Source of the DNA: Macrostomum lignano
Lineage: Eukaryota
Direction of reading: 5' to 3'
DNA: 64,000 nt
Assembly (NCBI GenBank): GCA_002269645.1
Contig: NIVC01002459.1
Location: 1 to 64,000 of the forward strand
Shown: piece by piece, positions 29,901 to 32,900 of the stretch
Numbering within the stretch: the first letter of the stretch is position 1
Layout: every line of letters starts with the position of its first letter
The notes under the pieces: generated by a model
What the model was told of the DNA's origin: nothing
Databases searched by the model: none
Seen by the model: only the letters and a program-made list of their open reading frames with translations
Program-made: the position numbers and the translations under genes

Positions 29901-32900
29901 GCCGCGCTCGCCGTTGTCGCCGAGTTGGCCCTTCTCGCCTTTGACGCCTGGCGGCCCGCGGGGACCTGACGGACCGGGCGGTCCCGGGTCGCCCGGCGGC
30001 CCGGCCTCGCCGTCTTTGCCGGGGGCACCGTCCGCTCCGTCGTCGCCGGGCGGGCCACGCTCGCCAGTTGGACCCGGCGGCCCGACGGCGGCCGCTGACC
30101 GGCGACTGCGGAACAGCCCGCCCAGCTTGGCGTCCGGGCCGGGGGCGCCGCGCTCTCCCTGTGGGTGGAGATCGGCGCTGCCCGTGTCTTCTTGTCTGTC
30201 TTTGGCTGTCTGTATCTGTCTTTGGCTGTTTATGACTGTCTGCTTGTCTGTCTTTGGCTGTTTGTGGCTGTCTGCTTGTCTGTCTTTGGCTGTTTGTGGC
30301 TGTCTGCTTGTCTGTCTTTGGCTGTTTGTGGCTGTCTGCTTGTCTGTCTTTGGCTGTTTATGACTGTCTGCTTGTCTGTCTTTGGCTGTTTATGACTGTC
30401 TGCTTGTCTGTCTTTGACTGTCTGTGTCTGTCTTTGGCTGTTTATGACTGTCTGCTTGTCTGTCTTTGACTGTCTGTGTCTGTCTTTGGCTGTTTATGAC
30501 TGTCTGCTTGTCTGTCTTTGACTGTCTGTGTCTGTCTTTGGCTGTTTATGACTGTCTGCTTGTCTGTCTGCTTGTCTGTCTTTGGCTGTTTATGACTATC
30601 TGCTTGTCTGTCTGCTTGTCTGTCTTTGACTGTTTATGACTTTTTGTGGCTGTCTTTGACTGTCTGCGTCTGGCTATCAGCTGATGCCCAAGCCGCAGAG
30701 CTCACCTTGTCGCCCTCAGGACCGATCGATCCCTTCAATCCCTGCTCGCCTTTGTCGCCCGGCTGGCCAGTTGATCCCCGGTTGCCGGGCGGCCCAACCG
30801 GTCCTGCAGGACCCTGGCAACACGAGAGTTTACCGGTTGCTCAATTTCGGAATTCCGACTGCAGTGCAGCAAAGGGCAGTATAGAAATGCGCTGCTTAGA
30901 CTACTCACAGTAACTCCGGGCGGCCCGTCCTTGCCCTGAGATCCGGCCGGTCCGGCCGAGCCGCCGTCGCCTTTCTCTCCTTTGCGTCCAGTCGGCCCGG
31001 CCGGTCCCTGCGAGCCCTTTTCGCCCGCCGGACCCGCCTTGCCCGCCGGGCCTGGGGCGCCCTTGCCGCCCACCGGGCCGCTCTGCCCCTGGGGTCCCGG
31101 TTCGCCCGGCGGCCCAGCCTCGCCCCGGTCGCCAACCGGCCCGGCCGCTCCCTGGGCACCCGGCTGTCCGGCCGGTCCGGCCGGTCCCGCGTCGCCCGGT
31201 GTCCCGGCCGGTCCCATCTGTCCGGCGCTGCCCGGCGCGCCTTGCGGACCGATGGCTCCCGGAGGCCCGACAGGGCCGGTCATGCCGGGCTCGCCAGGCG
31301 GCCCCGGGACCCCAGCCTCGCCCTTCGCGCCCTGGGCGCCCACAGACCCGGCCGAGCCCTGTGGACCCTGCTGTCCGGGCGGCCCCGGCTCGCCTGTCCG
31401 GCCAGGAATTCCCGGCTGGCCGCGGTCGCCCGGTGCACCGGCCAGGCCGGGGAAGCCGGGCTCGCCCGTCGGGCCTTGCGCGCCCGGCTGTCCGGCCCGA
31501 CCTGGCAGGCCGTCCTTACCCGGACGGCCGGGCTGTCCGCGCTCGCCTTTGACTCCGGGATTGCCAGCCTCGCCCGGACTGCCCGACCGTCCAGGGCTGC
31601 CACGACTTCCGGATTTGCCCGCCGGTCCCTGCGGCCCGGTGTCTCCTTTGGCGCCCTTCTCGCCCTGTGGTGCGTCTGAGCCTTTGGTGCCTTTGTGGCC
31701 CTTCGGTCCACTGTCGCCTTTCAGCCCAGCGGCGCCGGGAGCGCCCGGCTGTCCGGCCGCACCTGGCGGTCCCGGCCGGCCAGCCTGTCCATCGTAGCCG
31801 CGGGGTCCGGGATCGCCCGACTCGCCCGGCGACCCGGCCAGACCCAGCGGGCCGGCCTGTCCGGTTGGCCCGGTCGGCCCCAGCTCGCCTTTGTCACCTT
31901 TCTCGCCCGGCCGACCGGGCTTTCCTAGGCTGCCGCGGGCGCCGCTCTCGCCGGTCGGCCCCGGATCGCCCGGGAGTCCCGGGGGGCCGTCAACCCCGGT
32001 GGGGCCCTGATCGCCCTGCACCCCGGTGTGGCCTTTGCTGCCCACCGGTCCGGCCGGCCCATCCGGTCCCCGAGGTCCGGCCGGTCCGCGCGGCCCGTCG
32101 GCTCCCGGCCGTCCGGAGTCGCCCTGCAGGCCTTTACCGCCTTTGCCGCCTTTGCCGCCCGGATTGCCTTTGAGTCCGCGCGGCCCGATCTCGCCTTTGG
32201 CGCCGGCGCGGCCCGGCTCGCCTTTGGCGCCCTGTACACCTTTGCCGCCCGGCTGGCCCTTGACGCCCGGCTCGCCGGGAGCGCCGCGCGGGCCTGGCGA
32301 GCCCGCGAAGCCGCGCTGACCGTCTCGGCCGCTGGCGCCCTTCGGCCCGGGCGGCCCCGCGGCTCCAGGCGGCCCGGCGTCGCCTTTCGGACCCTCCGGC
32401 CCGGTCAGGCCCTTGTCGCCCTTTTTGCCGGGGTCTCCGGGGCTGCCGGCCTCGCCGGGGCGGCCCTCGGGACCGGGCGGCCCGGGCAGCCCGAGGTCGC
32501 CCCTGGGGCCAGGCGGACCGGCGGGTCCCCGCACCACAGGGCCGCCGCCGATGGAGCGGCCGCCGGGCAGGGAGCGGCCCCGGCTGCCGGGTCCTTTGAC
32601 ATCCGATGGCGGCGCTGGTGGCGCCGGCGGAGCGGCAGTTGTGGTTGTAGTAGTCGTTGTTGTTGTCGTTGTCGGACCGGCGTCGGCCTCACCGGCTCCT
32701 CCGCCGCTGCCCTCGATTTCGCTGGCGTCGGTGTCCAGCTGGCGTCGGGATCGGCTCAGGCTGGACGGCGGTTGCTCTGCAACTGATTGCAGTTTTTCGC
32801 AAAAAATGCTTTTACTCTACTGACAGTAGCATGACGTAGTAGTATCACTATTATTTATACCCAGGCAGACGATGCAGCAGCCGTCGTAGCTCAGCAGCTC

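Follow-up and report, generated by a model that had tools for sequence, protein, structure and literature searches.

Fibril-forming collagens are built around an unbroken rod some 300 nm long, in which even single Gly substitutions cause disease in vertebrates. Here, we describe a fibrillar procollagen gene of the flatworm Macrostomum lignano whose major triple helix is broken by 16 residues that include an Arg-Ser-Arg-Arg (RSRR) motif of the proprotein-convertase type. The gene is located in a 64,000-nucleotide stretch of genomic DNA (GenBank assembly GCA_002269645.1, contig NIVC01002459.1, positions 1 to 64,000 of the forward strand), referred to below as the window, to which all coordinates apply. 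An original prediction, made from the DNA letters, had described the break as an insert that divides the helix and exposes a furin-type site. In this study, we analyzed the structure of the gene, the position of the break relative to other fibrillar chains, the two convertase-type motifs of the protein and the available relatives. The break seems to be an expansion of an old imperfection at Gly598 of the helix, and it may be cut, at least partly, by the enzyme that would also remove the N-propeptide.

Gene structure and domain architecture

The collagen gene occupies positions 35467-26926 of the minus strand. Its model was assembled from six-frame translations and splice sites, and comprises eight exons with GT-AG introns throughout. 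The spliced model has a coding sequence of 4305 nucleotides with an intact open reading frame (ORF) and yields a procollagen of 1434 residues, in which a putative signal peptide, a 10-Cys VWC domain, a linker, a 1012-residue major helix and a COLFI domain follow one another. The parts of the gene are as follows; slashes within sequences mark exon borders here and cleavage points further below.

35467-35362, minus strand: exon 1, with the ATG, a hydrophobic signal-peptide core and the donor AACG/gtgagc (phase 1)
33079-32861, minus strand: exon 2, VWC domain of the N-propeptide
33047-32865, minus strand: VWC domain proper (residues 47-107), 10 Cys, with a CC pair near its C-terminal end
32776-30909, minus strand: exon 3, linker and helix residues 1-540, acceptor ttgcag, donor ACT/gtgagt
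30813-30706, minus strand: exon 4, a Gly-X-Y exon of 108 base pairs (bp), helix residues 541-576, ttgccag/GGT...AAG/gtgagc, both ends in phase 0
30705-30159, minus strand: intron 4, filled with a 52/64-bp minisatellite, 47% guanine plus cytosine (GC)
30158-28782, minus strand: exon 5, triplets GER GAP GPD, the break, 137 triplets and the C-telopeptide, acceptor ctccacccacag/GGA, donor GAC/gtaagc
28782-28793, minus strand: W-I-G-A/D-A-F at the exon 5/6 boundary, candidate C-proteinase site of the BMP1/tolloid type
27948-27864, minus strand: exon 6, C-propeptide
27781-27594, minus strand: exon 7, C-propeptide
27279-26926, minus strand: exon 8, C-propeptide and stop codon

The signal peptide was judged by eye from a hydrophobic, signal-like core at the N-terminus. 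The Pfam match to VWC is weak (E=9.8e-5, 23 bits against a cutoff of 27.6), and the full ten cysteines were counted. Exons 6-8 encode the COLFI C-propeptide with six Cys. Its match to PF01410 is strong (E=1e-21, 77.8 bits against a cutoff of 26.2) and spans profile positions 19-141 of 233 only, and the C-propeptide aligns with two relatives through to its LPVRD...VCFS end. The introns inside the helix are in phase 0 and follow residues 540 and 576, each of which is divisible by 18. Exon 3 thus ends on the complete Y codon of helix residue 540 (30 x 18), the helix exons begin with a Gly codon and end with a Y codon, and the 108 bp of exon 4 fit a derivation from 54-bp units. Such a layout is the classic pattern of fibrillar-collagen genes (PMC2852846). 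This exon pattern, together with the COLFI and VWC domains, therefore marks the product as a fibrillar procollagen, as originally predicted, and by its architecture we provisionally assign it to the VWC type as a clade-A-like chain. The linker between VWC and the major helix (residues 108-191) is non-collagenous and holds no minor triple helix.

The exon 5/6 junction is kept as WFGA-DAF in a relative (protein P0121 on contig L002, see below). Its assignment to BMP1/tolloid is presumptive and follows from the A/D type of the site. The C-telopeptide (28782-28850 plus 27940-27948, minus strand) is without any lysine, and therefore the usual C-telopeptide cross-link site is absent.

The major helix and its 16-residue break

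The major helix covers residues 192-1203. Its 1012 residues (585 + 16 + 411) consist of 95 triplets, an APQ triplet, 99 triplets, the 16-residue break and 137 triplets. The original prediction of 195 triplets, 16 residues and 137 triplets gave the lengths correctly, with the qualification that its 195 triplets include one with a Gly to Ala change. The features of the helix and of the motifs discussed below are the following.

30131-30084, minus strand: 16-residue helix break (residues 777-792, helix residues 586-601), inside exon 5
30116-30096, minus strand: convertase-type motif L-F-R-S-R-R/S in the break (RSRR at 30110-30099)
30095-30093, minus strand: Ala at helix residue 598 (A789), first Ala of the 'AAA' in the break, counted from the helix start
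31673-31665, minus strand: APQ imperfection, Gly to Ala (residue 477, triplet 96, helix residue 286)
32759-32739, minus strand: convertase-type motif L-S-R-S-R-R/Q in the N-terminal linker (RSRR at 32753-32742)

Fibrillar procollagens have an uninterrupted helix of about 338 triplets (1014 residues). The present helix agrees in length and fails in continuity, and the gene is accordingly a fibrillar-type gene with an atypical helix. It does not match the class of FACIT and other interrupted-helix collagens, given that COLFI is present and the 1012-residue rod holds only two imperfections. Measured from the helix's N-terminal end, the break lies at about 2.50-2.57 D-periods. The APQ triplet stands in the context GSD-APQ-GEK, and the metatranscriptome chain L003, introduced below, has no imperfection there.

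Minus-strand codons across the break read as had been predicted, RSRR included. After the cag acceptor, exon 5 starts with GGA GAG CGC GGC GCC CCC GGC CCG GAC. The break follows (GCC AAG CTG GGC GGG CTG TTC CGC AGT CGC CGG TCA GCG GCC GCC GTC), and the helix then resumes with GPP GPT GER (DNA GGG CCG CCG GGT...). The break is in frame and without a stop codon. Its GC content is 77%, with 88% at third codon positions (GC3), compared with 80% and 82% for exon 5 and 47% GC for intron 4; a strong GC3 bias (78%) runs across the whole gene, break included. Neither of the two other frames across the break reads Gly-X-Y, and a compensating pair of frameshifts therefore cannot account for it. No GT...AG pair brackets the break inside the exon. 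In-frame AGs do occur downstream, with a pyrimidine fraction of at most 0.5 and no polypyrimidine tract, unlike the used acceptor ctccacccacag; the earlier claim that no in-frame alternative acceptor removes the RSRR thus holds in practice. On the evidence of the genomic sequence, the break is a genuine coding feature that no credible splice would remove.

Several other origins of the segment were considered. Composition and the missing GT/AG rule out a retained intron, and a double frameshift is ruled out by the absence of Gly-X-Y from the other frames. When the reverse-complement frames were read by hand, an inversion appeared unlikely. The differing codons exclude a recent copy of the N-terminal site, and the frequency of NotI sites across the window excludes a cloning linker.

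Position of the break at helix residue 598

Two chains of other protostomes helped to place the break. The metatranscriptome chain L003 consists of VWC, a minor helix and a 338-triplet major helix (199 triplets, AER, 138 triplets) with a Gly to Ala change at residue 598. A chain of the ant Atta colombica (P0005) reads GEP-AER-GDP, followed by 138-139 triplets, and its change is thus equally far from the end of the helix. In the window gene, helix residue 598 is also an Ala, and it lies within the break.

MAFFT places gaps arbitrarily in whole-helix alignments of Gly-X-Y repeats; the register was thus derived by counting from both helix ends and from flanking anchors. Counted from the helix end, GPP GPT GER after the break matches GPP GPT GES of L003 in exact register. 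The upstream anchor is GSIGPEG in the window and GPIGPEG in L003, and the distance between the anchors (G-x-IGPEG to GPPGPTGE) is 28 residues in the window and 30 in L003. The three counts agree and therefore the 16 residues replace exactly six triplets, which in L003 are GVM GPP GPP GEP AER GDP. The replacement of about six triplets had been proposed earlier, and the 28 versus 30 residues enclosed by the anchors bear this out.

The former Gly positions in the break are occupied by A, G, F, R, A and V. Five of the six glycines are lost, and four of the five replacements (A, R, A and V) can be reached from a Gly codon by a single nucleotide change. The chance that a randomly placed break of six triplets includes triplet 200 is about 2%, and the break is therefore read as an expansion of an ancestral weak spot at Gly598. 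It seems, from this positional homology, to be a lineage-specific expansion of the old imperfection and not a new insert. The original idea of an insert is thus right about the replaced triplets, and needs revision in that the segment sits on the Gly598 imperfection of other protostome clade-A chains. Abalone chains are reportedly similar in this respect: Hdcol 1alpha is said to carry Ala, and Hdcol 2alpha Ser, as the 598th residue of the helix, both with six-Cys C-propeptides, and Hdcol 1alpha reportedly has no minor helix.

Two convertase-type motifs

The second RSRR is located in the N-propeptide where it had been predicted, and both copies agree with the R-X-K/R-R convertase consensus, as LFRSRR/SA in the break and LSRSRR/QL in the linker. 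They are the only R-x-[KR]-R motifs in the 1434-residue protein. In a 16-residue stretch of such composition, about 0.012 motifs of this form are expected by chance, or about 0.001 when the P6 Leu is counted. Among 385 other retrieved collagens, none of the 347 helix breaks of 8-30 residues contains R-x-[KR]-R. Leu at P6 and Arg at P4, P2 and P1 are shared by the two sites (L-x-R-S-R-R), and in both the P1' residue (S in the break, Q in the linker) is permissive for furin-type cleavage. Their RSRR codons differ (CGC AGT CGC CGG in the break, CGA TCC CGA CGC at the N-terminus), which excludes a recent duplication of the N-terminal DNA as the origin of the motif in the break. At the protein level, the break motif reads as a copy of the N-terminal consensus, P6 Leu included. 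It lies in a segment that is unable to form a helix, yet is tethered between two triple helices.

Downstream of the N-terminal motif follow an acidic GGAGE stretch, a 12-Thr run and the VKGP telopeptide motif. This linker (SLSRSRR/..., the run of 12, ..PPSDVKGPG) has the element order of the colF chains of the planarian Schmidtea mediterranea, for which the first ~400 residues are given in Supplementary Data 1 of Cote et al. 2019 (PMC6453901). The planarian N-termini read EPLRRLKR/QSGVKGP in colF-1, DSLNRIRR/QSDDEFTFGGAGEETTEGPTLPPGVKGP in colF-3, EPLSRLKR/QAEGEFTFGGAGEEEPETTEAP..PPSVKGP in colF-5, EPMRRLKR/Q in colF-6 and KLNRLKR/Q in colF-7 (PMC6453901). Hence, L/M-x-R-x-[KR]-R-Q occurs in five of the 11 planarian fibrillar collagens, a few residues past the predicted signal peptide, and the same acidic GGAGE and VKGP layout follows, collinear with the window linker. 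This suggests that the N-terminal site of the window gene is a lineage-typical proprotein-convertase site, and L-x-R-x-[KR]-R/Q is probably a general N-terminal processing signal of flatworm fibrillar collagens. No mention of the planarian motif was found in the parts searched of PMC6453901 and PMC8072372.

The Thr run itself (12 consecutive Thr at 32672-32637, minus strand, followed by an (A/P)-rich part) lies between RSRR and VKGP and is a mucin-like stretch, probably O-glycosylated. Planarian colF-3, colF-4 and colF-5 have shorter T-rich stretches at the same place.

The same tetrapeptide also occurs in other fibrillar chains. In the teleost clade-B chains P0009 and P0077, RSRR/NIDAS is found at the C-propeptide junction, just past the helix, a position that we take to be that of the furin site of pro-alpha1(V). 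A TSPN-type chain on metatranscriptome contig Ga0157572_1126780 (L005), with 338 uninterrupted triplets, has RSKR in its C-telopeptide (PARSKR/EIRGD). By sequence, this environmental transcript of an invertebrate carries a furin site in the style of clade B.

Relatives and constraint

Protein searches with the full-length sequence, with residues 600-1000 and with a 139-residue query centred on the break returned generic Gly-X-Y matches and no close relative, and the words of the break in their context occur in none of the 385 retrieved proteins. The C-propeptide as a protein query retrieved two short transcript fragments only, both from public sequencing runs. Of these, P0121 on contig L002 from run SRR30276804 is the better match, with 65-68% identity across the final 300 residues of the helix. 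It shares the C-telopeptide up to the /DAF junction and ends about 110 residues short of the break. The C-propeptide is 45-52% identical to its nearest relative. A metagenome scan with an alignment of C-propeptides yielded several distant full-length fibrillar collagen transcripts, L003 among them, that are not orthologues.

Relative to L002, the ratio of nonsynonymous to synonymous substitution rates (dN/dS) is 0.16 for the helix and 0.37 for the C-propeptide, with dS saturated, and therefore the gene family appears to be under constraint. With its intact ORF, canonical splice sites, GC3 bias and these ratios, the gene as a whole looks functional.

On the GC-rich L002 (positions 247-933 and 1-243), the gene caller of the public collection had reported Arg-rich wrong-frame ORFs and had begun the real product at an internal Met. 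As a result, protein searches probably miss helix fragments of related species.

Repeats and neighboring genes

Four of the seven collagen introns (1, 4, 5 and 7) are largely minisatellite arrays, and arrays of this kind also occupy a large part of the remaining window. The arrays and the other genes are listed below. The neighboring genes are all split by repeat-filled introns, and Rfam gave no matches on the window.

33102-35315: array in intron 1, 11 bp x 201 copies
30185-30667: array in intron 4, 52/64 bp
28031-28750: array in intron 5, 30 bp x 24
27374-27562: array in intron 7, 35 bp
1326-1877 and 20454-22530, plus strand: RING and RING+PHD finger genes
5836-17786, plus strand: phosphorylase-kinase-like gene, with a Glyco_hydro_15 domain match
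39551-44362, plus strand: rhodopsin-family G-protein-coupled receptor (GPCR)
55647-56111, minus strand: candidate class-C GPCR fragment, a weak match below the cutoff
62215-63094, plus strand: AlaDh/PNT-domain gene (AASS-like)

In addition, a low-complexity tract of about 3.6 kb at 48249-51848 is purine/pyrimidine-skewed, with a GC skew of up to 0.88, and open in several frames (SLSLS.../RERER...). It is almost certainly non-coding simple sequence.

Discussion

The best explanation of these data, which we hold tentatively and would place somewhat short of an even chance, is that the break arose by decay at Gly598, forms a hinge with a convertase motif and is cut at least partly. Under this explanation, the six Gly-X-Y triplets around the Gly598 imperfection would have degenerated in place with the deletion of two residues, and the rod would keep its canonical length (1012 versus 1014 residues) despite the break. 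With one in-register Gly, the 16 residues cannot be triple-helical according to the structural rules of collagen, and by these rules helix residues 586-601 should form a flexible, protease-exposed hinge. The hinge would display L-F-R-S-R-R/S, much like the chain's own N-terminal L-S-R-S-R-R/Q. A furin-like convertase of the late secretory pathway would remove the VWC propeptide at R120/Q121, and the same enzyme may also cut the hinge, at least partly, at R787/S788; the products would be an N-terminal helix of 585 residues and a C-terminal helix of 411 residues. That a furin-like convertase cuts at R787/S788 as well as at R120/Q121 is itself a tentative proposal, to which the two motifs point and to which we give less than even confidence.

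A further step, in which cuts at both L-x-R-S-R-R sites would let one gene yield two separate rods, with helices of about 2.5 D and 1.76 D that assemble or turn over independently, appears unlikely to us. The break holds one Lys (AKLGG), two residues past the end of the upstream helix, which might serve as a new telopeptide-like cross-link site after cutting. The 'remodelling switch' for regeneration of the original prediction has no support beyond the motif and is speculation.

Several observations weigh against a cut hinge derived from Gly598. A homologue of the break was not found in the protein searches, in an exhaustive representative search or in the metagenome scan. The imperfection is not universal, in that a similar chain (L010) has Gly at residue 598. 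Only five residues separate P1 from the helix that follows, and the short loop is anchored on both sides, which makes access of a convertase uncertain. In BLASTP, the window linker segment has no significant similarity to the planarian N-termini (E=6.7), and the resemblance described above is architectural. Two further points, the canonical length and the nature of the substitutions, bear equally on the main alternative.

According to this alternative, the hinge stays uncut and serves, where the helix was already imperfect in ancestors, as no more than a local kink, a flexible joint or a basic binding patch, with the RSRR held unused between two helices; we regard it as quite possible, although not probable. 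The helix retains its canonical 1012 residues, from which it can be argued that the intact rod is what selection sees. Arg and Ala at former Gly positions are the expected products of single-step changes in a GC-rich gene, and part of the motif could therefore be mutational drift. The break falls on an older imperfection, which other species tolerate without a cut, and interruptions are common in planarian COLFI collagens (PMC8072372). What speaks for cutting instead is the improbability of the motif by chance, more so with its P6 Leu, the lack of any such motif in the 347 other collagen breaks, and the duplication of a probable N-terminal processing site.

The gene could also be a decaying or specialized paralogue under relaxed constraint, one of many fibrillar genes, in which the RSRR would have no function. 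Such a state would suit the two independent imperfections (APQ and the break), the divergent C-propeptide with its 45-52% identity and dN/dS of 0.37, and a Pfam COLFI match that covers only part of the profile; planarians have 11 such genes (PMC6453901). We consider it improbable in view of the ORF that is intact over eight exons with all splice sites canonical, the GC3 bias that is maintained through the break, the helix dN/dS of 0.16, and the six C-propeptide Cys and LPVRD...VCFS end, which are kept as in relatives.

Finally, an assembly or sequencing error in exon 5, whose ~80% GC is in an error-prone range, or loss of the segment by non-canonical or alternative splicing, is very improbable for a segment that is in frame, stop-free and exon-like in composition, with other frames that are not Gly-X-Y, no bracketing GT...AG and downstream in-frame AGs that are without a pyrimidine tract.

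A cut hinge at Gly598 can be compared with several known systems. These include the protostome clade-A chains with an imperfection at Gly598 (Atta P0005 and L003), which have a VWC propeptide, a helix template of about 1014 residues and Ala at 598, and of which L003 has an identical GPPGPTGE just downstream. In these chains, a single residue is substituted (GEP-AER-GDP) and the helix continues, whereas the window gene has 16 non-collagen residues with a dibasic site. The planarian colF chains have COLFI, L/M-x-R-x-[KR]-R-Q, the acidic GGAGE stretch and the VKGP telopeptide in common with the window gene; in most of them the motif directly follows the signal peptide, whereas here the VWC domain precedes it. 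Clade-B procollagens (pro-alpha1(V) and alpha1(XI)) carry the same tetrapeptide in a non-collagenous segment that adjoins the triple helix, but their furin sites are at the rod ends, where they serve propeptide removal, and none is inside the major helix.

Among non-fibrillar collagens, the hinge of type VII and the discontinuous helices of types IV and VII similarly combine a non-collagenous stretch within a long helix with flexibility and protease sensitivity, but these chains are without COLFI and have many interruptions. Processing of collagens by convertases is known from propeptide junctions and from NC domains close to the membrane (PMC10538796). MACIT and nematode cuticle collagens are established cases of such cleavage beside a triple helix (PMC10538796). 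These resemble the window gene in having a dibasic convertase site in a non-collagenous segment that flanks Gly-X-Y domains; in contrast, their sites are N-terminal and shed or release the protein, and no fibril-forming rod is bisected.

Imperfections of the fibrillar helix are known in clade C and in some invertebrate fibrillar chains, and the clade-C collagens XXIV and XXVII have two Gly substitutions and one G-X-Y-Z in the major helix (PMC2852846). Like the window gene, they are fibrillar chains with tolerated major-helix imperfections, but theirs are one-residue events in a helix of 997 residues, and their N-terminal domain is TSPN and not VWC. Chan et al. 2021 reported multiple helix interruptions in nine of the 11 planarian COLFI collagens (PMC8072372). 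The premise of the original prediction, that the fibrillar helix is essentially uninterrupted, is thereby weakened at least for the flatworm lineage. An interrupted fibrillar helix is thus not new for this lineage. In the literature, we found no description of a convertase-type site inside a COLFI major helix or of such an expansion at Gly598.

The turning of an old single-residue imperfection into a loop with a convertase motif would show how interruptions arise by local decay at a weak spot of the fibrillar helix. If the loop is cut, this chain would be the first fibrillar collagen that is bisected by its own propeptide-processing enzyme, and if both sites are cut, the gene would represent an undescribed way of processing a fibril-forming collagen.

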